Position numbers and translations under genes: made by a program. DNA of 64,000 nt from Zygnema circumcarinatum SAG 698-1b (Eukaryota > Plantae > Zygnematophyceae): NCBI GenBank assembly GCA_037447605.1, contig CM074805.1:3629361-3693360 (forward strand), read 5' to 3'. How positions within the stretch are numbered: position 1 is the stretch's first letter; each line of letters starts with the position of its first letter. The notes under the pieces were generated by a model. That model had not been told where the DNA came from and made no database searches. It was given only the letters and a program-made list of their open reading frames with translations. Positions 10,801-42,500 of this stretch are shown in pieces.

Positions 10801-13800
10801 CTTTGAAGAGTTCCGAAGACTTGGTCTCCTCCCTCCCTTGGTGCAGCACCCATCCGCGGATCCAAATCCACCCGCTGGAGGTGAACTTTATGGAGTTCGA
10901 GAGCAGATTTGCAAAAATCTGACGGAAGCGAGCACAGTCTCCGAGCACCTCCTTGGGCATGTCATCTGCACAGGGGGGGAAGGCAATGGGGGGGTCTCAG
11001 CACCAATGCATGCATGCATGCCTGCACCATGGCAATACCGGCATCAAGAAATGCAGTTTCTCTGCCAAAAAGAGGCGGGCATTGGCACCTGATAGGTCGA
11101 GGCCAACATCAACTCCTGCAGTCGTGCAGTGCACGGCGAACATCTCCACGAGCGACTCCAACTCTCCAGTCGGGTCAAACACCTCCACTTCCAGATCCAA
11201 CTTGCCTTCTTCCACCTGCACAGCCAAACTCTCATTCCACTCTTATCGTTTGGCGGGAATTGCATGGCAATAGGCCTTGCATAAACCCCCTCGGGCTGAG
11301 ATGAGATGGGCTGCCCGTTCGGCACCTTGCTGAGGTCAAGAATGTTGTTGAGGATGCCCAGCAGGGCCATGGCGCAGCGGCGGATCTGAGAGACGATCTC
11401 GGCCTGGTCCACTGTGAGCGCCTGGTCGCACTGCAGGATGTCCATCAGCCCGATGATGCCGGCCATGGGGGTGCGCAGCTCGTGGCTGCGCCCTCGACAG
11501 GACTAGGGTTAGGGTTAGGGTTAGGGTTAGGGTTAGGGTTAGGGTTAGGGTTAGGGTTAGGGTTAGGGTTAGGGTTAGGGTTAGGGTTAGCGTTAGGGTT
11601 AGGGTTAGGGTTAGGGTTAGGGTTAGGGTTAGGGTTAGGGTTAGGGTTAGCGTTAGGGTTAGGGTTAGGGTTAGGGTTAGGGTTAGGGTTAGATTTAGGG
11701 TTAGGGTTAGGGTTAGGGTTAGGGTTAGGGTTAGGCTTAGGATTAGGGTTAGGGTTAGGGTTAGGGTTAGGGTTAGGGTTTATGGTTAGGATTAGGGTTA
11801 GGGTTAGGGTTAGGCTTAGGATTAGGGTTAGGGTTAGGGTTAGGGTTTATGGTTAGGATTAGGGTTAGGGTTAGGGTTAGGGTTTATGGTTAGGATTAGG
11901 ATTAGGGTTAGGGTTAGGGTTAGGGTTAGGGTTAGGGTTAGGGTTAGGCTTAGGATTAGGGTTAGGGTTCGGATTAGGGTTAAGGTTAGGGTTAGGGTTA
12001 GGGTTTATGGTTAGGATTAGGGTTAGGGTTAGGGTTAGGCTTAGGATTAGGGTTAGGGCTAGGGTTAAGGTTAGGGTTAGGGTTTATGGTTAGGATTAGG
12101 GTAGGGTTAGGGTTAGGGTTAGGCTTAGGATTAGGGTTGGGGTTAGGGTTAGAGTTAGGGTTAGGGTTAGGGTTAGGGTTAGGGTTAGGGTTAGGGTTAG
12201 GGTTAGGGTTAGGGTTAGGGTTAGGGTTAGGCTTAGGATTAGGGTTAGGGTTAGGATTAGGGTTAAGGTTAGGGTTAGGGTTAGGGTTTATGGTTAGGAT
12301 TAGGATTAGGGTTAGGGTTAGGCTTAGGATTAGGGTTAGGGTTACGGTTAGGGTTTATCGTTAGGATTAGGGTTAGGGTTAGGGTTAGGGTTTATGGTTA
12401 GGATTAGGGTTGGGGTTAGGGTTAGGGTTAGGTTTAGGGTTGGGGTTAGGGTTAGGGTTAGGGTTTATGGTTAGGATTAGGGTTAGGGTTAGGGTTAGGG
12501 TTTATGGTTAGGATTAGGATTAGGGTTAGATTTAGGGTTAGGGTTAGGGTTAGGCTTAGGGTTAACGTTAGGGTTAGGGTTAGGATTAGGGTAGGGTTAG
12601 GGTCAGGGTTAGGGTTAGGGTTAGGGTTAGGGTTAGCGTTAGGGTTAGGGTTAGGGTTAGGGTTAGGGTTAGGGTTAGAAATTGGGTTAGGGTTAGGATT
12701 GGGGATAAAAAATTAGGGTTAGGTTAGGGTTATGTGTTAAGGTTAGGCCTAGGGTTCCGGTTACACGTAGGGTTAGGGTTAGGGTTAGGGTTAGGGTAGG
12801 GTTAGGGTTTGGGTTAGGGTTAGGGTTAGGGTTAGAGTTAGGATAAGGGTTACGGTTAGGGTTAGATTTAGGGTTAGGGTTAGGGTTAGAATTAGGGTTA
12901 GGGTTAGGGTTGGAGAAGGGGGTAGATGGGGGAGGAGGAGGGGAGGGAGGGGTTAGGGGTAGGGGGGGAAGGAGAGAAGGGGGTAGGGCGGGTCGAGGGG
13001 GTATGGGGGATAAACAGGGTAGAGGGAATAGGGTTTTAAGGTTAAGGCTAAAGATAGGGTAGGTTAGGGCTAGGGGTAGGGTGCGGGCAAGGGGCAGGGG
13101 TAGAGTTGGTGGTGCAGGGTGGCGGGTGGGGGTGGGGGTAGGGTCAGAGTTTGGCAAAGATGTAACTGAGGCTTTCAGAAATGGCGAAAGAACCACGAAG
13201 GAACTAGGGAGATACGGAGTCAAGGGAAAGGGTCGTGGACAGATAGTGGAAGGATTTCTTCATCAGAATCGAGGCGTGGTCATACCTCATGTTGGCCATG
13301 AACTGAGTCTTGTAATCCCCCGGAGTTTCCACCTTGGTTCGCATCGAGGGTTCCGTGCTCTCTACTATTTGGGGCAGCATCACTTCTGGGGGTTTTTCCG
13401 TCATAGCAGTGTGAAGAACTATGGCCAGAGTTCCTAGAATGAAAATCCCACATGTGGCGGCAATTATAACTACAATCGCGATATAGTTTTCGTGACGAAG
13501 ATTTCCACAAATGTCGGCTGGAAGTAGCAGCACCACCACCTGCCCGGAGATGCAGAAAGATAGGGGCCATGAGAGAGGAAGAAAAAGAGAGAGGGAGGGG
13601 AAGTTGGGACAAGGAGGGGGGCACATGTCGATCTCGTCAAATAAAAACTTGGACATGGTTATCTTACCAGCGATAGCCCGTCTTGAACTACAGGCTTCGT
13701 GTTGATGCTGTAACTACTTCCATTTACGTCAATCGACAAATGTGACGTTTCTTTGAGCAGCAGCTGCTGCTTCGCCCCATTATACTCTTCGAAAATCCGC

Positions 13801-23785: not shown

Positions 23786-26700
23786 ATGGCTAGTAGTAGC
23801 AGAGACATGGCGAACATGGACTGCAACTCGGACAGCACTTCCAGAGGTGGGAGCAAATCAGGCGGGAGCCAGAGAGCGAGAGAGAGGGAGAGAGTTAGAG
23901 GAATAGGAGGCTCAATCGGGGACGAGAGAGGGTTAGAGAGCAAGGCCTCAGTCCTGGAGCCAGGAATCTCGTCAAACAATGTCGCCTCCAAGCCTTTTCT
24001 TTTTGGAAACTCGCAGGCAGACTTGGGTTTAGTTCCAAATTCTGCGCACCCCGCTCCTCAGAGCTCTTCAGGGCCGAAAGAAGGAGTTCCTGGAGCCCCT
24101 CCGATCGGAAATAGGCCTGCGCCATCTACTGGAGTCGCTGCTCCTAACAGAGCAGCGGGTGACTGGACTGAAGCTGTAGCAGCAGCCCTTTCAGCTTACC
24201 ACGCTTCAGTCACTCCCGACGCTGCTAGCAATGCAGCTGCAGCTCTTCTGCGAGGCGGACTGGTCGGAGCAACACCTCCCCGCGGACAAAGTGAATTTGA
24301 AGCAAAGAATCGTCACCAGGAATCTGAGCAGGGGAGGGTGGGTGACCGACAGGCCAACATTGCTCACCCTGTGACGTTGCCAGTCCAAAAGCAGAGAGGC
24401 GGTAGGGCAGCAAAAGCCGGTCCAGGGTCCAGGGGGGGTCCAGGGTCCAGGGGAGGCACTGGAGCTCGAGTTCGGAGAGCAAAGGAAAAAGCTGCGGCTG
24501 CAGCCGCCGCAGCAGCTGCAGCTGCTGCTCAGCCTGTGGGTTCAGGACAGAGGGAGGGGGTTCAAGGAGCTTCAAACACTATGCTCCGCCCAGCTGCAGG
24601 TTCTCTAGTGGCTGTTGCAGCTGCAAGGGGACAAGCTTTTCCGCAGGGGGGTGTACATATGGAGTCTTCTAGAGGGGCTCCTGATCTCGCATTAGGGCTG
24701 CTCTCTCAGTGCAGTGTGAAAGGGAAGCGGGGCAGCGTAAACGTGACAGGAAGCGTGGGTTCTGCTGGTAGCGCCCATTGGCATGGAGGGTCCAGGAGTG
24801 CTAATCAGGGGGTTGCAGAGCTGCCGGCTGAGCAGCTGCGGCAGGCAATTGGTGGAGGTAATGCAGGGGGACGGATGCCGCATCGAAGAATGCTGCAATT
24901 GAACGGTGAAAGCGCGCATTTCCAAGGTGAAACTCTCGTCCGCGTCTCTCGGCTGAAACTCTGAAGGCAGAAAGGTTGAGAATGAGGTCATGTCTCACAT
25001 TCGCCAACTCACTGAGTCATGCAGCTCCTTGTTACTCTGTACCTCGGCACCTTTGCAAGGTATCTCCTTTTCTAGCATTTCTTAGGGGTAGCACCTCGAT
25101 TCTGTCACCGGAAACACCTTGACGTAAGGGATTTTTGGTATATGTTTGTGAACAGGCTCTGCCCCCTACGAATTAGAACCTTCTGTGAAGAATGTGAAAG
25201 CCGAAGAAGCAAGAAACCTAGGAGCCGCGTATCGGCAGGCTACTTTTCCTGAACAAAGCATGTTGCGAAAGGAAGAGATGGAAAGCAGGGATGGAAGGGA
25301 GCCTCTGCCACCTATGGCGAATTCTTATGAGAATGGACTGACTCTGAGTGAGTGTACCGCACCATGCTGCCTTTTTTTCTTGTTGTTATTTCTACTTTTT
25401 CGTTTAGGCAGTTAAAACAGTTCTTGCATCGACACGTTATCAGCGAGGGAATTGAGGTTTAAGAAGACTCCTTAAAGTTTTTGTTTGGTTCCCTTTTCAT
25501 GCAGGTATGGATGGCTTAGGCAGCAGTAGACCTGTAGATTTAAGCAAGCACACCACCGACATTCCCTTTGAAAACCTTTTGGCGGGATATTTTCCCAAAC
25601 CTGCGCATATGAATCAATCGAAAAGAGACCGAGCAGGACAGGTTGAAGGAGATTCATCATCAGGGGTAACCAACCGTCCTGTCCTTGAAATGGGCTCAGA
25701 AGTGGAGGTGTTGTAGGGAGAGCTGTACGTCTCCATATTGTAGAGAACGCATGTTCATCACTTCTGTTAGAACTCCTTGATTTAAAGGTTTCTAGGCTTG
25801 TTTTTGTGGTGTGAATGGGAGTAAAAACCAAGCTCCGCTTTAGAATGATTCAGGCTGTGTAGAAATCTGGAAGGTTAGTCATAGTTCTGTAATGTCTTCC
25901 CCTCTTGACATGCTGAGAACGACTGTATTTCTTCGTGGTTTCTTTGCAGGCTTGGAGTGTACTTGGACTCATGATGGCCAGTTGGGGACTCAATGGCGTT
26001 GCCCCATCTAGCAGCTCACCAATGGAAGGAATGTATTGGAATGGTAATGTTGCAGGCAAAACTGTTGACTCGGTAAGTCCCCTCTAAAACCTGCCTTTAG
26101 AAAACTGGGAACTGGAAACTGGAAACTGGGAACTGGGAATGCAGTTTTAAGGACGGTCCAAACTGAGGCAGGGTGGGATACGAGCTTTCATGTCAACGAA
26201 AAGGAAATTTAGGTCAATTGAAAACTGGTTCAATTGAGTTCCTTCTGTAACGAAGCACTGGTTTGGGGTCGCAGAGCTATGGAGGGAGAGCCCAACCAAG
26301 TCTCCAGTATTCGCCAAGAAAGCAGCCACACATTTTTTCTGTCAACAGTCTTCCGTTACTCAGTCTGGAGGATTTTATGGCCAAGCTGGAATGGCCAGGT
26401 GGCGAATTTCAATTGGATGCCATGTTGCGGCAAGGCATTATAGAGTCCGGATTGGGGAAAGAAAGATTTTCAATTGGTGCAGAAAGTTCCGGGTTGGGAG
26501 ATGCACTGAATGTGGAAGGAGATGAGGGGGCGACGGGAGATAGGCTTATGCATATGCATGCTGATGCAGAAGCAGGAAGGGGGGGGGTGGAGAGGGAGGC
26601 AGCTAAAGTATATAGTTTAGAGGATGGGCAGAGAGATGTGGATGAGAGGTCGTTGGGTCGGCAATCACTATTGGAAGGGAGCGGAGGAAAGGTAGATGGA

Positions 26701-29700
26701 GGGAGATTTGAAGTAAGTGGAAAGATGAACGGCATTGAAGAAGGGAGGAGTCTGTGGTCGGATAGCAGCAAGGCGCAGGAAGTGAAGGAAGAGGAGCAAA
26801 ATACAAGGCTACCTCTCCCGCTCGCCTCTGAGATGAATAGTGCGAATAGAGTAGCCATTGGGGAGAGTAAGCAGCCGGAGGAGAGGACAAGAGGCATGGC
26901 TGGAGGGGCTGAAGATCGATGGGGAAATGCAGAAAGGGATGTCGCAGAAACGGTGGAAGGAAGGAGTGGGTTGGAAGGGAGAGGGGGCGGGAGGGGAGAC
27001 GCAGAAGAAGCTGATGTAAGTAGTGGAAATAGTGGTGCTATTCTAGCTGAGGCACGGTCGCATTCTAGAACAATTGTGGAGGATGAGGAAGTCAAAAGGA
27101 AAAGCAGGAGGGCGGATGAAGGGGACGAGAGAGAAACGAAGAAGGGGAGACTGGAGGAGACATCAGTCGGAGAGATTGCAGAAGCTCAAAGGGAGCAAAG
27201 CATTGCAAAAATGAAAAGTCTTGAGCCTGCAAGGGCAGTTGATTTGGAAGGAATTGAGGAGGCTGATGAAGGAGGAGGCCCTCCCGCACCTTACGGCAGC
27301 AATGCAGGAGTGGATGGGAAGGCAAAGCTGAAAGGGCGGACAATTGGAAGTGGTGCAAAAGGGTACAAGAAAGAGAAGGAAAGTTCTGCAAGTGAAAAGT
27401 CGGGAGGCAGCAAAGAAGTAAGGGGAGCTCCGGCGGAAGGGGCTGGGGCAGGGAAAGAATCACATAGAGTCAAGGAACGAACTTTGAAGGAGAGAAGAGA
27501 GGCTGCAAAGTTGCGTGTGCAGATGGGAAAGCAGGAGAAGCAGGTGACAGAGGGTTCTCCTTTGCCTCCCAGCCCTGCCTCTACCTCTCCCCTTGATGCG
27601 TCTCCAAGCAACAGTCTCTCTCTCCCTGCTCCCCAGGAGGTGCCTGGAGGCACAACTCAGACTCGAACAGCAGCTGAGGAAGATGTGGGAGATGTGAGTG
27701 ACAGGAGTGGGAGTGGAGGCACTGCATCTGCCACAGGTGGAGAGACAACTCCTCCTCCTGCAGCCGGATTAGCCGGTGAAGGGAGGCCAACTACCACCAG
27801 CCGCCCTCCCTCGTCCTCTACCCAAAGCATTGTTTCCTCAGCCATGCCTGCTGTCAACGGAATCAGCAGCCAACCCCCAGCTTCACTCAATTCTGCGTTA
27901 CCTTTCGAATCTACTACGGTTGAAACAGAGCAGCAGCAACAGAAGTGGGCTGAAAGGGAAGGAATGTATGCGAGAATGCTCGCTGTGGGAGACCCCTTGA
28001 TGCAGGGAGCAGTCCTGGGAGCCCAAACACTCCCTCGTGCTCGCCCCTCTAAAGCTGTTCCTCGGAGAAAGGCATCTCCCTTCTCTGCAGCCCTTACCGC
28101 TGCAAGCAAAGCCTTCAATGCGGGAGGGCTCCCTGCAGGGCCCCGTTCCTCCCCCTCCTCTGCAGCTTCTGCTTTGGCCCAGTCCTTAGCCTCGGGGACA
28201 GGTCTGGGGAAAGGGGGGAAGGAGAGAAAGCATTCAGAAGAGATCAGCAAACTGCGACTGGATGATCCGAACGATGCGGGCGAGGAAGGGAGCAGTGAAC
28301 TTGAGGGGGGAAAGGGGACAAGGGGAGGGACAGGAATGCATAGGCGAGCGTTGAGTCTGAGTAGCATTCCGAGCATTGATCCTGTAAGGGGGCTTTTGGA
28401 GCTGTCAAGTGCAGGGAAAGCTCAGCATGCAATGCAGCAATTGGGTTCGGATACTGGGGGGAAAGCTGCTTCAACTATTTGGCCAGCATTGAGTGGCGAT
28501 GAAGCCTCTTCTAGGCAGGTGACTGAAGGGACATTGAGTGCTGCGTTAGCAGCTGCAACAAGGGCTGCAGCAGGATCATCTCCGGCAGTAGGAGGCAGAG
28601 TTTCCCATCCTTCTGAAGGGGGAGTTGCCATCTCTGCTTCAGGAGATAGCAGGCTACCTCCGCTGAGTCCAGTTCGGAACGACGCATCTCGAAAGCAGAG
28701 AACAACGCTGCAGACTCCAAAGGTGAGCAAAGAGATTGAAAGATCAGGTAAGGGGGGGGGGACCGGGAGAGCGGTAGAATCACGGGAAGGTCAAATGAAG
28801 GTGGAAGGAGAAGTAGCTTTGACTTCGTATAAAGATGGGGATAAAGAGGTGGCCCTTGAGGCCCTGCTTGCGTCGATAGCTTCAAGAGTGACAGCTATAG
28901 AGGGGAATAGGAGCAGTGCAGATGAGGGGGGGACGAGCATATTGGAGAAAGGGGCTGAAGCCGTGAAGAATGAAGAAGGACGGGAGACTCAGTTGAAGGG
29001 AGAGGTGAGTGAAGGTTTTGCGATTAGGCAAGCTTCACAGAAAAATGGCTTCGAAGGGACAGGGGGTAGTGGAGGAGAGGTCAATAAGGCAGGTGCTGCA
29101 GGGAAAGTTTCCGTAAAAAATGAGGGCATTGAAGTTCTTGCTGAGTATGCACTGGAAATAGAGGGCACGGAAAGTGCCGGCAATTTGGATCAGAAAGGCA
29201 CCGAAAAGAAAGGAGAGCAAAGAAGAGACCAAGGAACATCGATAGCCACATATGATGCCGAAACTGACTCGCACCAAGGTGAGGGTGTACAGAAGAATGG
29301 AGCTGAGCCTGGGCAGGAAAATGTTCCAAGTGGTGGAACTGTTGAAAATAAAGAAGCTGCTTTGGCAGAAAGCCAAGAACGAACTGTAGAGCGTGCACTG
29401 CTGCAAGAAGAAGGAACTTCCAGAAAACGAATGAGAATGCGAGTAGGGGAGAGTGGGAGGTCTGGTAGTCGTGGATTGGGCAAGGTGAAGGATGTGGCGG
29501 AGTCACCAGATGGAGAGAGTGGGGAGCAAAGCACGAACGGGAACAGTACAAAGAATGGTGAGCCTTGGGTCAAACGATTCAAAGCCACAAAAGAGGATGG
29601 AGTGAACGTGAAAGCGGAAGCCATAGAGAAGCAGAGGTCAGCGTTTGTTGGGCAAAGTGATAGCGTTGTGCGGAGTGGGAGTGAGCCCGAGAAGCGAGGC

Positions 29701-31223
29701 GAAGGGGGAGAGGATGAGAGAGGTGGGACAGCACTCGCGAGCATTAAGAAAGAACCCGTGGAAGGGAGGGAGGCTGGCAATGGAAAGGCCAGTCATGAGG
29801 GAAGAAGCAGTCTGGCCACAAAAGGCAATGATTCGATGAGTGATGAGAGCGACCTTGAGATGGACGATGACTCAGGTGAGCCTTTGCTGTTACGGAACAG
29901 AACACTGCAGATAATGGACATTTCAGTTTTTTCCTTCTCTATCATAAACCTTGACTTGCTGTGTCCGGCCAAAGTTGAGGCATGCTATAAGCGGGGAGGC
30001 GAGTGGAGTGCAAGGGGAGCTGCTTGCTACACCTTCCTTCTTCTGATCTTGACCTGCAATGGGAGGGGTATTTTGATTCTGCAGATGCCATGTCTCCTGG
30101 GGCAGCGGCAGCAGCTCTTATGTTGTGCAGCCTCTCTGGGGGGCATGTGGGCTTACGCGTGCTGGAAGAGAGGGAGAGTGAGAAGATGAAGGCATCGAAA
30201 CCACTGCACGTGCGCGGTAAGGGTGGATCGCAGAGTGGAAGCAGAGCTGCTGTCAAGGTCGGTAGTCCGCGCACAGAGCGACCAAAAAGTATTCAGGAAG
30301 TGAAAGTGAAGCATGGAAGAGATGACAATGCTGGAACGAGCTCTGCTCAGAAAGATCGCGGGAAAGCAGCAGGTGCTAGATCGAAACAGGAGGCAGGCAA
30401 AGCAGTAACCCCTCGGAAGAGAGCTGAAAGAGGGGGTGCAGCAGCTGGGAGTGAGGGAGGAAAATTTGGGAGCGGTTCTGCGAAGGAAGACGCTCTGCCC
30501 CTCGGCAGTGTGGTAGTGAAGGGGACGGCTACCAAACGACCCCCTTCACCACTTCCTTCGAAAGGATATGCTGTGGGAGAGGCAAAGGGAGTGCTCCCTC
30601 CCAACGTGTCAAGTTTAAGGATGCGACCTCCATCTCCGTCGACCAAGGCGCCGCCATCACCTCAGAGCAGAGAGAAAAGGCTTTCATTGGATGCAAGTCG
30701 AGACGACAGTCAGGAGTCGGGTCCGGTTGCAAAAGGAAGAGTGAGAAAAAGAGGAGGAGGTGGGTTGAAGGGGCAGACCACGGGGAGGTGTGGGGATGCG
30801 GAACGAATGGAGGGACCGGTTGGAGCATTAGGAGGGGAGAGGGCGAGTTTGGAAATGAGAGGGAAGGGGCAGGAGGAGGAGGCAGAAGAGGAGGACGTGA
30901 CAAGACATCGGATGGCAGGGGAGGAGGGAAATGGTAGGGTTAAAGGTGATGGGGAGGTGAAAAGAGACGAGAACGTGCATGGTGGAGGGGAAGATTCCAA
31001 GGAAATGAGAAGGCGGAAAAAGCGGCGAGAAGATGATCAAGGGTTGTCAGGGAAGGGGGTGGGAGGAATTAGAGGAGATGGAGGAGAGAAGAGGGGAGAA
31101 AGGAAAGGACAGCAGGAGAGTTCTGAAGGCAATGAAGAAAGACTGCACCCTGGCGTTAAGGTCAGAAGACTTTCATCCATAGAGCTTGCGAGTAGGATGG
31201 GACACGGCAAAGCAGGGAAGTGA
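23786..31223 (+). CDS. Very large, mostly disordered hypothetical protein (over 2000 aa), multi-exon
   Basis: Long open frames 23786-24964, ~26350-29875 and 30085-31223. The 29875|GT...AG|30085 splice is in frame. Small candidate exons lie near 25185-25350, 25507-25707 and 25951-26071. G/E/S/A/R-rich, with basic NLS-like stretches. Internal exon joins are uncertain. Confidence 0.65.
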
Positions 31224-32153
31224 TGGTGTGGGTTCCCCCTTCCCTTTGCAGACCAGTGTGAACCGCATTCGAAGCTCCTGATTGGGAGCTTACCACCTCA
31301 GATCAAACCACCTCTAATTTTGGCAGGACATTGCTTAGGCTGCTGTAGGTTCATTCGTGATTGTCAGGCTAGCTTTCTTTTCCTGTTCGTGAGGTTCAGT
31401 TTGTGTATATAAATGGCCTCAACATCGGGTACCTATTCCGATCTCACTTGTTCTGTTCCTACGGCGGTTGTGAATGTTCTATGCTACTGTAACTCATCAA
31501 GTTAAATTGTGAAAGTGGCTCTGCACAAAATGGATGTGGAGCGCAATGTCAGCATAAGGCCATTCTTTTATTCTCAATGCTATTCACTCATTCGTGCACG
31601 TCAAAACTCTCCTTGTTTGTTTTGTATCTCCTCACCCTTTTGCTTTTGGGCAGCAATTTTAACGCCTATCTTGTACATGAGAGTGCTGCATGTGATGTAT
31701 GGGTTGTATGGCACGTGTGGATGTATGGTTGCATGATACAACCGATTGTAGTTGCACACGAAAATAGCATGTTACTCGTTTTTTTTTTTTTTTCCCCTCC
31801 ACTTATGTTTGTCTTTTACTGTTTCATTCTAGAAAGAAAAAAAAAGAAAGAAAGTCCGATGTCGTTTTGAAAGTACCGTATACAGTCAGGAAGATGTCAA
31901 TGTTCCGACATCCGGACCAGTGCTCACTGAAACTGTTCAGGCGCAAAACTTTCGCGAAATCAGTTCCTATGTCGGCTATGTGCAGTAAAAGTGTTCAGCT
32001 CCGCGAGACTGTATGCGACTTCGCGGTTTTCGAGGCGTATCGTTTCTCAAGCCAATTGCTTCTGTTTCAGACGCGGCCTCAAGAGGAAGAAATGTTGAAA
32101 GAGTGGAGGCAGCAGCCAGCAGTGCAGCCATGCTGCAAACCTACCTTTCAACC

Positions 32154-34412
32154 TTACGCTGCTCCAAAGATAGGCGGCCCCGCTGGCAGGGTCGGGGCCG
32201 TCTCTGGGCGCACAATTTTAAGGAGGGGATGTTGAAAATCCGCGTGGCCTTCCCGCGCTTCGCAGCGTTCGCACATGTCAAAGTCGGGACAGATTGTGCA
32301 GCGATAGCGGATGCCTACAATGGGGAAAGTCCTGTTCACGCGGTAGACACAGTCAGTTCGGCGCTGCTTTCAACAAGTGACTGCAAGTGAGAGAGCTACA
32401 CAGTTGCTTAGCTGCACAGACGAGAAGACGCGGAGTTCAGCGCAGGTTTAGAGACGAGATGAGACTTACCCGCAGACATCGCATTTGACTCCCATGTGGA
32501 CGAACCCTCTCCGGGACCAAAGGGCGAGATTGCGACCATAGAGATGCATTTTGGAGGTGTCGATGCGAAGCATGAGATGGTCGTGATAATGAATGGGCCC
32601 CAAAAGGGAGTGCTTATCGGGGCAGCATTTTTCGCAGAGGTCATAGTCAGGGCACACCGTACACCTGTACTGCAGTGCTCCGACTCTCACCCTCTCATAG
32701 CAGCCATCACAGGTGTACGCTACAGCAGCCGGTGGAGCGGTCCACATGGAAGGAGGAGAAGCTGTTGAGCTGCCTCCTTCTGTCGGCCGCCCAGAAAATA
32801 ACTGTGACACCAGGGAGCCGAAAAAGTCCCCTTTGGTTTGAGCCTCTTTCATCTTCTTGGAGATGGCCGCCATGGCTGCTTCTTCCACAGCTCCTGTGCT
32901 GGTTGCTAAGTACCACTGCACTGTCACTCGCACAGGATAGCGCTCATCTCGGCGGTATCGTGAAAGCAGCCATGGGTGTGGAAAGAGCCCCTGAGCTTCA
33001 CCAACGCTCACTATGGCTGGCTCAACTGTTCCATCTGCAGACATCGCAAGGAAGCCATCGTCTATGGCGGAAGGAGTAAGCGCAGGAGAGGAGAGCGCAG
33101 AGAAGGCGAAGAACTGCGAACTTGAAGGTGCATTAGAATGGTTCGCCCCAAACGCTGCAGGGCTAGCAGAAGCGGTTCCGAATAAGCTGCAGCTTGGAGA
33201 AGAAGAAGACGAAGGCGAAACTCCAAAGGCTGGAGAAGGAGCGCTGCCTAATGAGAAGCAACTCGAAGCAAAAGTTGGGGCGGAAAACGGATTGTTTGAT
33301 GCTGGCGACGAACACGGATAGACGGGGTTATGCGCTTTTGTAAGAGGCACCTGCACACAGATTCACAGAAAGAGTTCACGTCTCTCAGATCGGTCCTGAA
33401 TAATGGAAATTTGAAGTGTTTATATTATTGATTAGGAAGTTCCTGTTACTCTTAATCACCTACCTGTATGACGAGAACAACATTCTGGCGGCGCTCTTCT
33501 GAAGTCATCACGCCCTCCGCAAATACTCCGCGCTGCAGTCGGTCGCTTTCCAGGCGTATTCCAACAAAGGGACATTTCAAACCGTGGGCATTGTGCCATA
33601 GGCGCTTGTCTGCTCCTGCAAAAGCACACACACACAAAACTCAAGCAAAAGGTCTGTGAAGATATCAAATTGTCTCCTCGGAGAACCTCTCCACTATCAA
33701 GTGCGCGGCCGTTCGGATTGTAGCGTAAGAAACTGCACGTTTATGCTGATTCCATAACGAGCAAATACTTACCTTGTGCCGCAGTTAAAATCTGAACACT
33801 GCTCCCGTGCGCCGTAACCAAAATTACTAATACCGCTGCGTTTTCCTGCTCCAAGGAAGTTCCAAAAGCATGCAGCTCGAGGTTGAACACAGTCTTCTCA
33901 TTCGCAGATTTCCCCACTGGAAGGAGCGCTGCCTGTGAAGTGACGACAGCGTGGGAGTCTCTCGTCGGAGCGAGCAGGCCGTGCTGCTGAAACGGAGCTA
34001 CATTCTTGATGTTGCGCAGAACTTCGTTCAAGGGAACAGAACGCAGCTCACCAGGTCTATTCAAAGGAGATGAGACGAAACGAGAGTAGGCATCGAACGG
34101 GTTCAAAAAAATAGGGTTCCCAATATCGAAAACTAGGGGAATGCTCGCCATGGGAACGTCCCACGAAAAATCAGCAAAGTTAGGATTTCGGATGAGGGGC
34201 ATGCGGAAACCATCCGCAACCACTGATAAGTTTCCAAGGAAAGGGCCAAAATTCGAAAACTTGAAGCGCCCGCAGTCCTCCCACGAAGTGTTGGTTATTT
34301 GCAAACCGTATTTCGCCGCCATAGCCTGCGCTTCTGCATCTTGATACAGGCTTGACGCCCTTTGGAAAGCTTCTGTTCGCTGACAATAAAGAGGAGTAGA
34401 GCCGCCTCCCAT
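32154..34412 (-). CDS. Uncharacterised globular domain fused to two ZZ-type zinc fingers
   Basis: In-frame exons 34412-33773, 33615-33464, 33350-32470, 32331-32154. ZZ1: CDGC...YRCTVCPDYDLCEKC...HYHDH. ZZ2 is reassembled by splicing: HMGVKCDVCG|TFPIVGIRYRCTICPDFDMCERC...H..FQH. The start codon may lie further upstream. Confidence 0.85.
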
Positions 34413-34669
34413 GAGTGCGAGAGACGCCAACAACTCGCCGCTAAGTACCCTCCGCGCGTGCGATAACGGGAAACCGGAGCTGCCTGTAGGGATTGTGTCT
34501 CTTTTCCTCCACACCTTCGTGCTGCCTCTCTCCCTCCCCCCCTCCCCCTTCTCTCCCTCTCCCTCTCCTCCGCCACGGCCCCCAGGCGGCTCCCCGCGCT
34601 TTGTAGCCGGAGAGAGGGTGCCCCTGCGCCGCTGAAGGGCGAGGACTGTACAGCCAGATGGCAGGCGCT

Positions 34670-34880
34670 GACTGGTTCACGTCGGTTGCGTGCTATCCAC
34701 GCAATGACTTGCCGTGCACTGCACGCCGCCGGGTCAAAGAGGAATCTAACTGCCAATGACGCACTGCCACGTTTACATCCACGTGGACAGCAAGGACATC
34801 CACGTGGTGGAATCACGCCGTCGACCAATCCTGACTCAGAGCGCGTCGGGGCGAATCAGCGGCAGCCACGTCATCCAGCT
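34670..34880. promoter_or_regulatory. G-box (ACGT-core) cluster upstream of the ZZ gene
   Basis: ttcacgtc, gccacgtt, acatccacgtgg twice (direct repeat) and gccacgtca, plus ccaat boxes, 250-470 bp upstream of the ATG. Confidence 0.4.
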
Positions 34881-35049
34881 CCTATCGCAGCCAGCGAGGA
34901 CGAGCCGGTAACCCGGCGGGCCGTTGACCGTTGACTGCAGCCCGCCGTCCGTACACTCAGCAGCTGCGGCCGGGCGGAAGCATTGTCGTATTCGCGGGCG
35001 GGTGGACTGCGGTTGATCAAGTCGACTTTTCGTACTGTTCGGGTCGGTA

Positions 35050-36155
35050 CAGTAGGGGGTCCTCATATTTTCCACCCTGGTTCCGGGCAAAAAGAGGCGA
35101 AAATATTAAATTTGCATATATAAGGTTCGTGTTACGAATAGACGGGCGGTATTATGTTAGAGTTCATGTTGAACCGTACGTATCGCACCGTACCATATCG
35201 TACCGTACCGTACTGTATCATTTAGAATCGTATCGTATCGTGACATATCGTGACGCATGTACTGTGGTACATACTGTCGTCATCCAACCATCGGGGAGTT
35301 TCGTATCGTATCGATCATATCGTATTGTATTGTATCGTATCGTATCGAAGTCAAGAAGACGGGGAGAAGAGCGAGCGCCTCTTACGGCGGCACGAGCGGG
35401 GAGATTAGGTGCGTTTTGCGTAAGCCCGTACAGTAGGACCCCGTCATATTTTCCACCTACATTTGGCAAAAATCGGGCGAAAATATTGTATTTGGCAAAT
35501 ATAAGGTCCGTGTTACCAATAGGCGAGCGGAATTATGTTAGAGTTTATGTGTGTCCGTACATATCGTATCGTATCGTATCGTGTCGTTTTCTGTCATATC
35601 GCAGCGCATCGTACCGTAACGTATCGTGGCAAACCGCATACAGTACATGAAGCACGCCTTAGCGTTTACTGAGGCAGCAAACCGAACAGCTTCGAGCCCG
35701 TAACGGCTACTACAGCTCGTACGGCTAAGTACGGATATAGCCGTATCGGGGCGTATCGTATCGTATCGAAGCCAAGAAGAAGTGGAGAAGAGCGAGCGCC
35801 TCTTACGGCGGCACGTGCGGGGAGAACAGGTGAGTTTTGCGTAAGCCCGTGACGGCTAGTACAGCTAGTACGGGTAGTACGGTTAGTACGGTTAGTTTGG
35901 ATAGTACGGACAGTACGGCTAACACAAGTTACCGTACAAAAAGGTGGTTTCGGCAAAATCGGGGCGAATTTCTTGGGGACGCACTTTTGATGGTGGAAAA
36001 TATGACGGGGTCCTACTGTAACGGCTAGTACAGATAGTACGGACAGTACGAACAGTACGGCTAACACAAGTTACCGTACAAAAAAGTGGTTTCGGCAAAA
36101 TTGGGGCGAAAATATTGAGGACGCACTCCTTGGGGTGGTAAATACGAGGACCCCC
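35050..36155. mobile_element. Tc1/mariner-type MITE, outer copy, interrupted by a sister copy
   Basis: TA|CAGTAGGGGGTCCTCATATTTTCCACC left end; degenerate right end GGTGGTAAATACGAGGACCCCC. Internal modules and (CGTAT)n tract are shared with the other copies. Confidence 0.75.
35431..36018. mobile_element. Tc1/mariner-type MITE, inner copy (588 bp)
   Basis: Perfect 27-bp TIR CAGTAGGACCCCGTCATATTTTCCACC, with a TA duplicated on both sides. Confidence 0.9.
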
Positions 36156-36550
36156 CCCGGTGGACACCTTCCTTCGCCAGTGCGCCCATCGCTCCTTCGA
36201 GATGCACGGCCCCGGAAGCCCTCCTCCGGCGATCTTGGCTACCTTTTATCGACAGCGTATTTCCGTCGCCCTTCAGCGTTGCCTCGCTTCTACGCTTCTT
36301 CGGCGTGCTGCAGTTGTTGGTGATCGTGTTGGTGGACTTCCGCCGCTCCCTCCTCGCGACGTGCCTCACATCGGTGACCTTCGCGGCTGCTTCTAGGGCT
36401 GCGTTGTTGTGCCTAGGCGTAGTTTTCCGCTCTAGCTTTGTTTTATTGTGTTTTGGTCCTTTGTGACCAGTCCTTCGTGGTTCCACATTTTGCCTTTGTC
36501 CATGTACATTTGATGGCCTCGCCATCGCGAGTTCAATGAAAGTTTCCCTT

Positions 36551-39500
36551 TGTAGCGTAGTGGAGCTGCGCTCGACGGATCCGCGTCAGTTCCGTTGTAC
36601 TTGACATATGCCTCTTCAGTGTCACGGACCGGCATAATCCAGGAGCTGCGGACGGAGAATGCGAGAAGGCGGCGCCATGTGTTGGCGGCCCACGGAACAG
36701 CACACCATCCAGCAAGGCNNNNNNNNNNATGACAGAGGCAGGGGTTCCAGAGGGGGTCTGTCTTGCCTGTGGCACGAATCATAATCCGAGGCTGCGCTGT
36801 GGGCCATGGACCTGCACTTTCTGCCAGATTACGGGACATGATGCCCGTGTATGCATGCGGAGACTCTCCAGTGAGAAAGCCCGAAAGGGGAAGGATGCAG
36901 CTGCAGGGAGCTCTCTTGCAGAGATCACTTTCATGGACATGCTCCCGCTACCCACACACACCACCACTTGAGAAAACCCATGCCCTCACCGCCCACCTCC
37001 TTCACTCCTCTTATACTCATCCCAAGAAAGTCCACATCCATCTCAGACTCCTATGGAGTCCTCCTGGATAAACGCCTTAGGCCGAAGTCCGGGATCTGGC
37101 TGCCCGCACACATCGCTACCGACATTGCCGCAAAGATTGCAACCGCTTGGTCTGAATCCCCTGGTCACCTCTGGTGGGAGAGTGTCAAGCCCAGACGCAT
37201 TTATTGCAGCCGCCTTGGCGCAGCTCCCCAGGAACCAGTGATCCTCATTCGCATCCCCCGCCATCTCCCTCGCCAAACGCTGCAAATGCCAGCTCCTTCC
37301 GCACTGCCTCCACACTGCCGAGAACCTCCGCCCTCCCTCTTCCACGGTCATCCTTGTTCCATGCTTGAGGAGGGATACTGACATTTTACCGGTGGGAGGC
37401 GCTGGCGGCTGCATGCCGTAGCCGCATAGCCGCGACAGAGGACATGTACGTGAATCTCCCTATCGCCTCGGGCGTGCCCGCTGCTTATCCTCAAGCGCCG
37501 ACACGCACTACCTCCCCTCGGCCAGATGTGGCCTATATCCCCTCATTGAACGATGGTTCATCGCCTACGGGGACAGTACAAGATCGAATTACCTTGTCAC
37601 GCTTGGGATGCAGCTTGGTTCCGTGCCTACTGTAGTTCAGCTGGTTTACGCTGCAGGCCACTGCAGCCTCCCACGTTCCTATGGCACCTCCTCCCGCATC
37701 CTCGGGCCAGATATATTAATTACATGGCTAACGCTTCTTCCATTCTCGCTCGCTCTCCTCCCGCCACGCCCCTTTTGCCGCATTCATATGTCCTCCCTCT
37801 CATCCCAACACCCAATGTGCGGATCATTGTCAATGTATGGCTGAATGGCCATCCTAGCAAGGCCATGATAGACACTGGAGCTATGCGCACAGTTCTGTCT
37901 AAACCAGTGATGAAGGCTACAGGTGTTAAGTTGGACAAGACACTTGAACCCATCCCCAGATATGTGGGGGTTGAGGGTAGTCTGCATGAAGGTTTGGGCA
38001 GTGCACAGGTGATCATCAGCCTTGGAGAGATGGGAGCCACAGTGAATGCGGTCATCACTGCCGCTGAGCATTATTTTATCCTGCTTGGCTCAGATTGGCT
38101 CATTGCAATGGGGGCACAAATTGACTTTTCCACATGTCAGCTGCACTTATCTACTGGAGGGACAGATTGCTCCTTCCCCATAATACTTGAGTCCCTTGCC
38201 ACCTCCGCCTTCCCCAAACGACACGCCACGGCGCAGGTCTCATACCCAGAGATCAACATGTACCATGCGGTCGGCAGTCCCCATTCTTCCTATGGATCTG
38301 CCAATTCTGATACTGAGGAAGAGACTCCCCCTCCTGCTCCTCCGGGTCCAGCCCTCTGTGCGCAGACAGAAGACCTTTTGCCGCCGGTGATAGCTACACC
38401 CAGCTTCCCCGCCCACGAGACCATCAGTGATGAAGAGTGGCTGAAGATAGAGGGACAGATGCGATTGGGGCCAGCAGTACTCTCAGACCCAATCAAGCAT
38501 TCGCAATTGCGACAAGTGCTGCGCCGCAATCACCTAGTTTTTGCCCGCCATGCACTCGACATCGGAAAGACCCACCTGATTGAGCATCACATCGATACGG
38601 GAGATTCCCCCCCAGTGATGACCATGACCCCTTATCGCTTTTCCGCTGCTCAACAGGCCGATGTCGAAAGACAGATCGATGAGAATGTGGCTGCCGGATT
38701 GATGGAACCCGGAGAAGGACCTTGGGCCAGCCCGGCCGTTTTGCCACCAAAGCCGGATGGCACTTTCGCTTCGCGGAGACTATCGAAACTCGAACGCAGC
38801 GGGATCTAAGTGGGATCCTTTTATACATTGCCTCTGGGATAGGGACTTTATTCTCCACGGGCGCCTCCCCGATGACCAAGAGCCCAAGATCGATATGCGT
38901 AAGTCCTTCTCGCATCCTTTGCGACAAAGCCAATCGCCGCAAAGATGGCTTTTTGCACGCCACACACGCCAGGCAGTGGACAAGGCTTCCCTTTGGGCTC
39001 AAGAATTCCAGCCAAACTCACCAGCGCCTGGCCAACCAGGTCTTCGGTCCCTGTCGCGCCTTCTGCGAACCGTATGTGGATGATGCTTCCCTCCACAGCA
39101 AGGATTGGTCCTCCCACCTGCAACACATTGACCAAGTACTGCAACAGCTCATCAGTGCGAGTTTGAAGATTGCCCCCAAGAAATGCAAGCGGGGCCATCA
39201 GGAGATCACTCACCTAGGACATCGTCTTGGCATCAATGGACTGAAGCCATCACTCGACAAAATTGAGGCCATTGACCTCATGCCAGTTCCACAGAACCTC
39301 ACTCAGCTCAAATCTTTCTTGGGACTCACCTCATTCTATCGCCGGTTCATCAAGGGTTATGCCCTTATCGCGCGTCCCCTACATGCCTTGGAGAAACACG
39401 GAGTCCACTACGAATGGAGCCGAGCGCAAGATCTGTCCTTCAATGCACTCAAGAGTGCCCTCGCCAGAGCTCCTTATGCGCATCAATTCAACCCACCACT

Positions 39501-42500
39501 TACAATCATTGGCGCCCGGTGGAGTGGGAGGCGGGCTTTGGGAGAAGGCGTGGCGATCAAGCATTCTCGATGGGGAACACCGGTCCGTTTATGCGGTCTG
39601 ATTAAACCAAAGGGCCAAGAATGCGACCCCCTCACGAGGCGAGGGCAGCCCGGCTATTCTCACAGGCACTCGAGGGGTTTAAAGCTCAACTACGACTACC
39701 GGCCATTGTCGTGGTTGACACGCTACTTTCCATGCGCACATCATGGCTACCTGGGCCAGGATTTGCCGCGTTGGGTGATGAAGTTGAGGAGTATAATGTA
39801 CTTCAAGGTCACTTCACCGCCTCGACTCCTGAGCCACTCAAGCAATGCAGACGCCCTCGGCCAAACTTTGGCTCCACTCCTTCGCCACACGATCCGCCGC
39901 CTCAACTCCATCATCCCACCCACCCTTCAACCCCGAAAGACCTTCCCATCGAGATTTTATTGCAAATCAAGACTCCGCATGATGTCATATTCGCCGATGG
40001 GCTGATTGATATTCCGGCCACGGCCACCACCCTCCATCGCTGGCAAGACCCTGACTTCACCCACGGCCACCCTCATGCGGATCCTTGGGAACTCCTCATG
40101 GATGACGACGGCGAAGCTCCCTTTCTTCCTCCCTCACTTCCCGAAAGTGCCAATGACGCTCACTGGACTCTCTTCTCGCTACGCCATGACTCACACACCG
40201 CCTCTTTATCACCGACACCGGAGAGGCTCGCCATTCCGCTGAATCCTCGGCGATGATGATGGTCAGATTCTCTACCTCCCTCCGCCTTCCTGCTCCTTCC
40301 CCAACGGCGCCATGGAAATCCCGATGTCGCCCACGATGCCAGCAGAAGCCTCCGCCGATTCCACCTGGCCGTAAGAAGATGGTCGCCATGCCGCAGAGCG
40401 CCATTATCGCCCCGACTCCATGCATGCTATGGAGCCGAGCACAGCCGAAACCTCAAGCACTGCTGCCAACGCCACTCTCCACCGCCAACCCCTAGGGATG
40501 GGTGAGATCCGGATACGAGGCGTTGCAGAAGATTGGAACATTGACACCTTTTCTATCCCCCAGCTCGGCACCCCCTCTGGCTACATTCGGGTATTCCTAG
40601 CAGTGGACAGATACACCAAATGGGTGGAAGTTCACGCTACACCTAAGCACTAGTCCATACTCGCTGCTCTCTCGACGCTAATATTCACCGGGCTACTTTC
40701 CCCTACTGCTCACTCGACAATGGCATCAATATTAAAGGGGCGTTTGCTGCCTATGCAAGACTTCCGCGATTATTCACCGCATTCTCAAATTTCTACTCCC
40801 CGCGTATCGGGCTTAACGCAGACCATATGACCGCCAAGGACGCTGTAGCCCGCAAGCGCGCTGAGCCGGAGGCGGATCATACAGGTCATCCTCCCCTCGC
40901 CTACTTTACAACACTTCGTGCACTCCTCCACCGCTTTCCTACAGCCTTATGGCCGTAGAAGCTCCCGCGATTCCCTTGACCTCCTCTCCCTCGCTGAGCT
41001 CTCACGGCGACGCTTCCCCTGCATCGGGTAGCTCCGCCTTCCTAGCCTCCGCTTCCAAACCCTAGATTCCATGGCATCCCACCGCCTCGAACGCGCGCAC
41101 AGACGACAACTCACCGACTTTGGGAGGCGCCGACGCGCTGCTCTCCCGCCCAAACAGGTCCCGCCACGTCAGCTCATTTCTCTGGCTCAGGAATCTCGCC
41201 AAACCGAGTCAACGGGCTCCTCCGTGGTTGGGCCCCTTATTTTGTGTCGGTCCGTCGGAGATCCCGGGTTGGGCCATCATTTCGGAGGGCCCTGACTCCA
41301 GTGGGAACGCCCGGCGCTGGCGTTCACACTGGATCGACATTCGTGCCGCCACGTCAGCGGTTCCTCCCCCCCGCGATGGCTGACCGTTCGCGACCGACAG
41401 CGCAGCCTCCTCCGTACCCACCCCTGCCATGACTACTCCTCATTGGTCCATTTCTACCCCGCCACTTTGCCACTACCAACATTTCGCCACCGTCGCCTTT
41501 CCGAGCAAGGTCATAAAGCAATTTTTCTCCCTTGCTTAATGTACGCTGAAGCTTTCCATATGGCTACCGATTTCGCTTAATGGGCGGCCTCTCCGCCTGC
41601 ATCATTGTTTCTCCTTCCTTCTCTTCATTGGCAGGGCGGCGCTTTGTTTTTCTCGCATGTGCTATGTGATGTAGCGTAGTGGAGCTGCTAAGCTGACGGA
41701 TCCGCTGCCAGTTCCGCGTGTACTTTACATATGCCTTTTCAGTGTCACTTCTGACCGCATACCTAGAGCCGCCATTTTATAATGGCGCAGAAGGCGGGCG
41801 CCATGTGTTGGCGCTCCACGGAACAAGACACCATCCAAGGCGCGACTTCGGAGCGCCAGACAATGCCGCCGACCGCCATTTGTTGACCCATCGGCTGCCC
41901 ACGAGTCGGCCAGGCTCTCGCTGGCAGTTGGCCAATCGGTGACTGCCAATGCTAAGACTGGGTGATCTACCGCCGCATAAGTAGATGGGATGTCAGTGAT
42001 GCTAGTTTGTCTTTTAGTGTTGGGCTTAGTATTTGTATTTGCTGTGTGGTTTGTTGTCTTGTTCTGCTTTTTCTGCCTCTTCAGCTCCAGCAACAGATGC
42101 TAGGTAAGAGAGAGAGAGAGAGAGTTCCATTGCATAGAGAGAAAGAGAAAGAGTCTTCTTGCTGATAGCATTTAGACATCCCATTCAGCCCAGCCAGACA
42201 AAGATTTCAGTGAGAAGACACTTTCATTGTAATGACAATCCCCCGCCAATCGCTGGCTGGGGTGAGTTTCCAAAACACAACCTTTATCTAAGCTGAGTCC
42301 TATTTTCCCCTTGCTGTCACTATGCCAAGCTACCATCTTGTGATATCCTGCCTTACACTCCTCCTAATGACCGATGATAACTAGAAGTCTAGCGAAGAGA
42401 ATAGCCGAAGAGAGGACAGGGGAAGAGAGCCCCCAAGGAAGGGCTCTTTGCGCATCGAGTCCAGCCGCCGGTGGGAACATCTTCAGGATCCCTACGTCTT

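Follow-up and report, generated by a model that had tools for sequence, protein, structure and literature searches.

The described systems closest to the gene treated here are p62/SQSTM1, NBR1 with its fission-yeast relative Nbr1, and the N-degron proteins BIG/UBR4 and KCMF1. p62/SQSTM1 is an autophagy receptor and N-recognin with the domain order PB1-ZZ-LIR-UBA (LIR, LC3-interacting region), and the combination of PB1 with ZZ is the signature of p62 and NBR1. NBR1 and fission-yeast Nbr1 contain PB1, one to three ZZ fingers and an FW domain. Fungal Nbr1 binds cargo via its ZZ and FW domains, the latter being an immunoglobulin (Ig)-like sandwich of bacterial type (PMC9582228). In the ZZ finger of p62 the alpha-NH3+ group of the substrate is held by Asp129 and Asp149 and the first peptide bond by Asp147, while the side chain is read by Asn132 (PMC6098011). 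Here we describe a gene of the streptophyte alga Zygnema circumcarinatum SAG 698-1b, found on the minus strand at 32154-34412 of a 64,000-nucleotide stretch of contig CM074805.1 (hereafter the window, to which all positions refer). Its protein couples two ZZ fingers to a large, predicted beta-sandwich domain, of which the latter belongs to no family in the libraries searched and the former are ordinary.

In general plan the protein resembles NBR1, as ZZ fingers are joined to a predicted beta-sandwich of Ig-like type with bacterial counterparts. The sandwich is, however, about three times larger than FW and has other conserved motifs. A relation to the FW domain itself was considered and rejected, as there was no match to the Pfam family N_BRCA1_IG and FW was absent among the structural neighbours. 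Like p62, the N-terminal domain has relatives that carry PB1 and ZZ, but the Zygnema protein has two ZZ fingers and is without PB1, UBA or a recognised LIR, and most of it consists of the unrelated sandwich of ~330 residues. Indeed, PB1, FW and UBA gave no Pfam match in any of the exon products, and no conserved candidate for an ATG8-interacting motif (AIM) was seen in the tails, short motifs of this kind being too degenerate to call. Unlike BIG/UBR4, the protein lacks a UBR box, a RING and any other ligase module and therefore cannot ubiquitylate on its own.

The same DNA had been the subject of a preliminary description made from the sequence alone. Compared with it, the loss at an invariant site, the stand-alone bacterial relatives with a signal-like N-terminus, the PB1 and CUE partners and the vertical history of the gene are new.

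One transcript for the domain and both fingers

The interval 32154-34412 is the coding span, from ATG to stop, of a four-exon gene, and the coordinates of the preliminary description agree with it exactly. The coding sequence of 1851 nucleotides (nt) encodes 616 amino acids and a stop, and is obtained from four minus-strand open reading frames (ORFs; 33741-34514, 33452-33637, 32466-33356 and 32154-32339) joined via three GT..AG introns. The acceptor at 32331/32332 is the sole choice that restores the frame, and it also completes the second ZZ finger. All three introns are spliced out in transcript contigs of four public runs from three studies. A single contig of 2382 nt spans 31779-34558 and includes all three junctions with zero sequence differences from the genome, and minor contigs of lower depth keep intron 1 or intron 3. 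A single mRNA thus encodes the N-terminal domain together with both ZZ fingers, and the ZZ exons are not a separate gene, a possibility that had been raised beforehand. No in-frame ATG precedes the one at 34412 in its ORF, and the N-terminus MGGG (34400-34412) is common to the orthologues of Mesotaenium and Spirogloea.

A large domain family without a name

With the product of exon 1 (213 amino acids) as the query, an exhaustive phmmer search over 1.84 billion representative sequences returned 419 representative clusters at E<=1e-3, 144 of which were at E<=1e-10. The best E value was 4.3e-27 and the best identity to exon 1 was 42%. A search with the family profile extended this to at least 3,149 clusters at E<=1e-10, and every named one among them is called "hypothetical". 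The full-length protein can be aligned over its entire length with ZZ-bearing orthologues (31-38% identity, E values down to 1e-107). In contrast to this abundance, the domain libraries are silent. Exon 1 had no match in Pfam, NCBIfam or PDB sequences, a PDB profile search with the N-terminal domain gave no match, and none of the 52 members scanned had a Pfam family on the domain. Lenient scans with core-only and bacterial members (Pfam at E<=10 for the core-only ones; NCBIfam, PADLOC and PHROGs) brought up nothing relevant, and in a literature search no described domain with the fusion partners reported below was found. By these comparisons the N-terminal domain is a real, large and unnamed family outside every family and fold library searched, and the earlier description of it as an unannotated domain holds for Pfam, NCBIfam, PDB, PADLOC and PHROGs alike. 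Thousands of proteins carry a well-folded domain of ~330 residues that is unnamed in domain libraries and has no clearly similar solved structure.

All eight sequence blocks quoted in the preliminary description were located (amino acids 39-50, 71-87, 146-165, 193-205, 258-267, 398-417, 438-445 and 451-455), and each coincides with a block conserved in the family alignment of 224 sequences. The motif set of the family is WED-x2-R, PNF-x-D, RD, SAQ, IQVPL, RD-x-R-x-P-x-R-x-T-x-Q-x-Y, GSLV and RPTE. Some of the residues thought to be invariant are nearly so, namely W-E-D (98/95/99%), the first R-D (86/96%) and the second R-D (99/96%), but the His of R-D-x-H (61%) and the last Arg of R-D-x-R (73%) are weaker columns.

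From bacteria to algae, some 70 columns show at least 85% conservation, and many of them hold Asp, Glu, Arg, Asn, Gln, Ser, Thr or Tyr. As such a set of polar and charged residues is typical of active sites, the beta-sandwich could be an undescribed enzyme, which the ZZ fingers would recruit to N-degron or autophagy substrates for modification or cleavage. Fusion to targeting modules such as ZZ, CUE and PB1 is common for enzymes of the ubiquitin system, and the bacterial copies, being single-domain proteins with a signal-like N-terminus, resemble many secreted hydrolases in this respect. The family has, however, no invariant Cys or His, and neither sequence nor fold searches revealed likeness to any known enzyme or a match to a characterised family. 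Together with the state of the Zygnema copy, described next, these points make a recruited enzyme rather unlikely.

Divergence at the most conserved positions

The two best conserved motifs of the family are replaced in the Zygnema protein (Table 1). In the column of the invariant Asp, 222 sequences comprise 220 Asp, one Asn (this gene) and one Gln, the last from Spirogloea muscicola. This S. muscicola protein (P0151, SM000172S03045) reads GPCIRQGAFF where relatives read GPNISDMTL, and its lack of the Asp is probably a local annotation or splice error and not a second natural loss. At the other motif, N-Y-Q-S, the Pro that follows is also changed, to Ala. The genomic sequence at the changed motifs is confirmed by transcript contigs. 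The Zygnema copy is identical to the family at 57 of the 70 columns with at least 85% conservation. Counted over 69 conserved columns it has 13 deviations, against a median of 2 in 217 relatives, which is the third highest number among 218 sequences, and its end branch is 0.89 long compared to 0.30 for the Mesotaenium sister.

We infer that the Asp and N-Y-Q motifs form the key site of the family and that this site is absent from the present copy. If the family is catalytic, this copy would still probably be inactive, because the invariant Asp is Asn and N-Y-Q is A-F-G. The long end branch and the high number of changes at conserved columns might also be expected of a relaxed, fast-evolving copy that is drifting to loss and has no specific function. 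Such decay is improbable in view of a 616-codon frame that is intact over four exons, correctly spliced and represented by RNA-derived contigs in three studies, and of the retention of most conserved columns, all zinc ligands and both acidic triads of the ZZ fingers. The frame, the splicing, the remaining fold-defining motifs and both ZZ fingers appear to be still under constraint. The gene thereby offers a natural mutant of the most invariant site of the family, useful for separating scaffold function from site function.

ZZ fingers and FG-rich loop

ZZ is the sole Pfam family matched by the exon products of the gene, once in exon 3 and once in exon 4 (PF00569; 32.7 bits for ZZ1 and 37.4 bits for ZZ2, against a gathering cut-off of 21.4). 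In both fingers the eight zinc ligands follow the pattern CxxC...CxxC...CxxC...H..H and all 16 are retained, the set of ZZ2 being complete only once intron 3 is removed. Among solved structures, the nearest to ZZ2 is the ZZ finger of p62/SQSTM1 (2.4e-8), then those of fission-yeast Nbr1, BIG and HERC2. ZZ1 is nearest to Arabidopsis BIG (2.7e-8), to which it aligns over 55 residues including the H-x3-H end, and then to fission-yeast Nbr1, p62, HERC2, CBP/p300 and KCMF1. Fission-yeast Nbr1 is thus among the best solved matches of both fingers (E values of 1.3e-7 and 7.7e-8).

These structures bear out the p62/NBR1-like character given to the fingers on account of their acidic residues. Equivalents of the p62 triad Asp129/Asp147/Asp149 are present in ZZ1 (CDGC and CPDYD) as well as in ZZ2 (CDVC and CPDFD). 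Across orthologues the triad is best preserved in ZZ1, and in ZZ2 it is preserved in streptophyte algae only. Unlike in p62, the position of Asn132, directly behind the first CxxC, is occupied by Tyr in ZZ1 and by Gly in ZZ2. Judged by these residues, it is plausible that the fingers read a free N-terminus. Specificity for Arg or Tyr cannot be assumed, because the Asn132 equivalent is lost in both.

The Ser/Phe/Pro linker with FG-like repeats that had been noticed inside the domain corresponds to a loop between IQVPL and VEPAI. It has 104 amino acids, against a family median of 39, and includes 28 Ser, 18 Ala, 13 Pro and 10 Phe, so that Ser, Pro, Ala, Phe and Gly together account for 72% of it. 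The loop is found in all orthologues with the order domain-ZZ-ZZ, where it has 46-146 amino acids and 2-9 FG dipeptides. On this comparison the FG-rich insert is a conserved trait of the ZZ-type subfamily and not noise. The C-terminal tail of green-algal orthologues (Table 1) differs from that of the fungal ones, which is RVW-x-SEDL-x-QIGL. In the model of the Mesotaenium orthologue the last eight residues reach a predicted local distance difference test score (pLDDT) of up to 69 after a stretch at 45, which hints that the C-terminal tail may dock somewhere.

Predicted fold

Two relatives were modelled, the core-only protein P0001 (361 amino acids, with a 120-sequence alignment) and the full-length Mesotaenium orthologue P0002, and a like fold is predicted for the Zygnema protein. 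The P0001 model (pLDDT 92.9, predicted template modelling score (pTM) 0.92) has a helical hairpin at its N-terminus; the remainder is a large beta-sandwich of mostly antiparallel strands and includes three short helices. In the Mesotaenium model the beta-sandwich domain has pLDDT >90 and the inserted loop, at 41-52, is disordered, while both ZZ fingers are folded (pLDDT ~80-92) and sit on flexible linkers.

Foldseek found no match to the P0001 model in the PDB at E<=1e-3, and in an Atlas shape search the template modelling (TM) score by query was at most 0.39. Atlas look-ups by features, or with the poor model stored there, yielded nothing usable. VIA-align over 48,161 representatives gave no chain with Z>=5, the best of the wide search being an MSP domain at 4.7. 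In a second look with the same tool, RhoGDI2 reached Z 4.9 over 113 residues and TEAD YAP-binding domains Z 4.0-4.4 over up to 175 residues, the highest of these being TEAD2. The typical best Z for models without a true match is 7-8, and since the values obtained here lie under this usual background no function is readable from the fold.

RhoGDI and TEAD, the nearest solved folds, are both Ig-like sandwiches with a lipid pocket, and the N-terminal domain could by analogy be a sandwich that binds lipids or lipidated proteins, acting as a chaperone or sensor of lipid-modified proteins for which the ZZ fingers provide a second contact. That streptophyte orthologues begin with Met-Gly-Gly-Gly would suit such a role, but while the Mesotaenium N-terminus fits the usual myristoylation pattern, that of Zygnema, with Pro at position 7, does not. 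In addition to structural scores in the noise range, the domain has 5-10% identity to RhoGDI and TEAD and no motif in common with them, and its conserved residues are mostly polar, not hydrophobic. A lipid-binding sandwich is consequently an improbable explanation.

Two giant-virus proteins are true members of the family (Marseillevirus LCMAC202 and Moumouvirus goulette; 34-40% identity, TM 0.85-0.86). Beyond these, Foldseek in BFVD gave matches with E values of 1e-7 to 1e-4 and TM of about 0.3-0.5 to uncharacterised proteins of nimaviruses (wsv390), baculoviruses (P22.2, Ac17-like), ascoviruses, iridoviruses, nudiviruses and a pithovirus. Judging from the models, a common sandwich core may exist among proteins of unknown function in large DNA viruses.

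Domain partners, distribution and phylogeny

Among 52 longer members of the family, Pfam identified ZZ in 13, CUE in five, PB1 in two and ubiquitin in one, and SAM, a RanBP-type zinc finger, START, FH2 and a weak UBR box were found once each. The architectures include PB1-domain-ZZ, PB1-CUE-domain, PB1-domain, CUE-domain, domain-SAM and domain-ZZ-ZZ. The last of these is common to Mesotaenium, Spirogloea, Bryopsis, Mucoromycota and an oomycete, and the relatives with PB1 are P0017, P0055 and P0318. Fusions to ubiquitin-like domains, mentioned in the preliminary description, do therefore occur, in the form of ubiquitin, PB1 and CUE. As hallmark modules of selective autophagy linked to ubiquitin and N-degrons, the eukaryotic partners PB1, ZZ, CUE and ubiquitin are a testable lead to the role of the domain.

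In bacteria the gene encodes a stand-alone single-domain protein. A signal-like hydrophobic segment is found at the N-terminus of 71 of the 72 bacterial copies and in 0 of 15 eukaryotic members. The analysis of bacterial gene neighbourhoods that had been proposed proved uninformative: 80 loci were clustered and two were read by hand, and no neighbour family occurred in more than seven of the 80, so that the context gives no functional clue.

Bacterial carriers comprise at least 572 species-representative genomes. They include numerous cyanobacteria, with the complete genome of Acaryochloris marina MBIC11017 as one of them, and also Myxococcota, Anaerolineae/Chloroflexota, Spirochaetota, Planctomycetota, Vulcanimicrobiota and Omnitrophota. 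One cyanobacterial metagenome-assembled genome (L008) has two tandem copies. The named eukaryotic members are from the streptophyte algae Mesotaenium endlicherianum and Spirogloea muscicola, the chlorophyte Bryopsis, the Mucoromycota Endogone and Umbelopsis, the oomycetes Saprolegnia and Achlya, the foraminifer Elphidium and the amoeba Stereomyxa. The distribution given at the outset, covering cyanobacteria, planctomycetes, myxobacteria, protists and giant viruses, was recovered by the searches. Equally, the domain had been called unfamiliar from land plants, and none of the 118 best relatives of the Mesotaenium orthologue and none of the 120 best profile matches is named as a land-plant protein.

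In a midpoint-rooted tree of 97 core sequences, the Zygnema protein groups with its orthologues from Mesotaenium and Spirogloea, which have the same domain order, with a Shimodaira-Hasegawa-like approximate likelihood ratio test (SH-aLRT) support of 96. Thirteen of the 14 ZZ-bearing members fall in one clade, together with Bryopsis, Mucoromycota and oomycetes (support 81-85). Of the two origins suggested earlier, horizontal acquisition or loss in embryophytes, the first is contradicted by the tree, at least as a recent transfer into this alga, since the gene groups with those of streptophyte algae. For the same reason loss is the better option, and the tree favours vertical descent in the green lineage followed by embryophyte loss. 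The domain partners in eukaryotes point to proteostasis machinery that is present in the closest algal relatives of land plants and apparently missing from land plants themselves.

The named bacteria fall into a single tight clade with short branches (support 100), which in the midpoint-rooted tree is nested among far more diverse sequences of eukaryote type. A single transfer followed by spread among bacteria would fit, its direction not being established.

Taken at its widest, the material could mean that the beta-sandwich represents a novel module for recognising cargo or ligands (or for catalysis) which, with PB1, ZZ, CUE or ubiquitin, defines a so far undescribed class of sorting receptors, similar to p62/NBR1, in algae, early fungi, oomycetes, amoebae and foraminifera. 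The history of this class would include exchange with bacteria and giant viruses as well as loss in land plants, and the algal copy would be a natural "dead-site" version that separates the scaffold from the ancestral site. We consider so broad a reading doubtful.

Possible role of the protein

The explanation that we prefer, tentatively and with somewhat less than even confidence, is that the protein is a non-catalytic, cytosolic, multi-domain adaptor. Its ZZ fingers would dock free protein N-termini, and the beta-sandwich would serve as a second recognition surface, in the part taken by the FW domain in NBR1, while the FG-rich loop might contribute weak multivalent contacts. Together these parts would place the protein in ubiquitin- or autophagy-linked protein sorting. 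In this copy the beta-sandwich is most likely without its ancestral chemistry or ligand binding and would act as a scaffold; such a pseudoenzyme-like state is suggested by the replacement of the invariant Asp and N-Y-Q and by the long branch. A cytosolic location is suggested by the eukaryotic members, none of which has a signal-like N-terminus.

Several points weigh against an adaptor of this kind. For all members of the family binding or activity is a prediction, and that the lost residues make up one site is suggested only by their joint loss. The link to autophagy is drawn only from the domain partners of relatives, and in this protein no AIM/LIR, UBA or PB1 was found. The bacterial members stand alone and have a signal-like N-terminus, which makes it unlikely that the ancestral ligand or substrate was ubiquitin itself. 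The many invariant polar residues are no less expected of an enzyme than of a binding module. Finally, the claim of site loss covers this one gene copy.

Features of the gene and its surroundings

The features of the gene are collected in Table 1.

Table 1. Exons, introns, domains and altered motifs of the Zygnema gene (positions in the window)
Feature	Position	Strand	Amino acids	Remarks
Exon 1	33773..34412	-	1-213 + one base	ATG at 34412; contigs unbroken over 33772-34558; WED, MPLIRNPNF, RDSH...SQAALLP and AVLVILV...GSS blocks
Intron 1	33616..33772	-		157 nt, GT..AG; skipped in contigs of four runs
Exon 2	33464..33615	-	214-264	gene model and transcript contigs
Intron 2	33351..33463	-		113 nt, GT..AG; skipped in transcript contigs
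Exon 3	32470..33350	-	265-558	end of domain N-part, FG-rich loop, domain C-part, ZZ1, start of ZZ2
Intron 3	32332..32469	-		138 nt, GT..AG; interrupts ZZ2 after CDVCG; skipped in contigs
Exon 4	32154..32331	-	558-616 + stop	remainder of ZZ2; tail ending PPIFGAA
N-part of unnamed beta-sandwich domain	33342..34340 (introns 1 and 2 included)	-	25-267	phmmer and family alignment
GPFLGNLSV in place of GP-N-I-S-D-M-T-L	34221..34247	-	56-64	invariant Asp is Asn61 here
AFGT in place of N-Y-Q-S	33858..33869	-	182-185	motif 95-99% conserved in family
Expanded disordered loop	33030..33341	-	268-371	Ser/Ala/Pro/Phe-rich, three FG dipeptides; low confidence in the models of both relatives
C-part of beta-sandwich domain	32778..33029	-	372-455	blocks RDERYPVRVTVQWY, GSLV and GRPTE; family alignment
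ZZ finger 1 (ZZ1)	32577..32711	-	478-522	CDGC...CPDYDLC...HxxxH; Pfam ZZ 6.7e-8
ZZ finger 2 (ZZ2)	32229..32483 (intron 3 included)	-	554-592	CDVC...CPDFDMC...GHADFQH; Pfam ZZ 2.2e-9
C-terminal tail PPIFGAA	32157..32177	-		PP-x-FG tail common to green-algal orthologues

Downstream of the gene, on the plus strand at 26263-31223, an ORF of 1308 amino acids is followed by a Lys/Gly/Glu-rich one of 406 amino acids, neither with a Pfam match, and a 6.1-kb transcript contig ends near 31793. The two ORFs may represent a large convergent neighbour, the 3' end of which abuts the 3' untranslated region of the ZZ gene. Several transcript contigs break at 31780-31793, where the genome has a run of about 14 T that mimics a minus-strand poly(A) end. 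A poly(A) end at 31779 was dropped for this reason, the apparent A-tail coinciding with the genomic T-run.

An Rfam scan of 30000-37000 found nothing. Upstream of the gene, 37553-40005 of the plus strand contains retroelement remnants with a gag-type aspartyl protease (8.7e-9) and a reverse transcriptase (1.3e-14), and the interval 34931-36144, between these remnants and the gene, is densely filled with tandem repeats, of pentamers (TCGTA/TATCG) and of a 142-bp unit. Elsewhere in the window, a long array of the TTAGGG type with 233 copies is located at 11504-12911.

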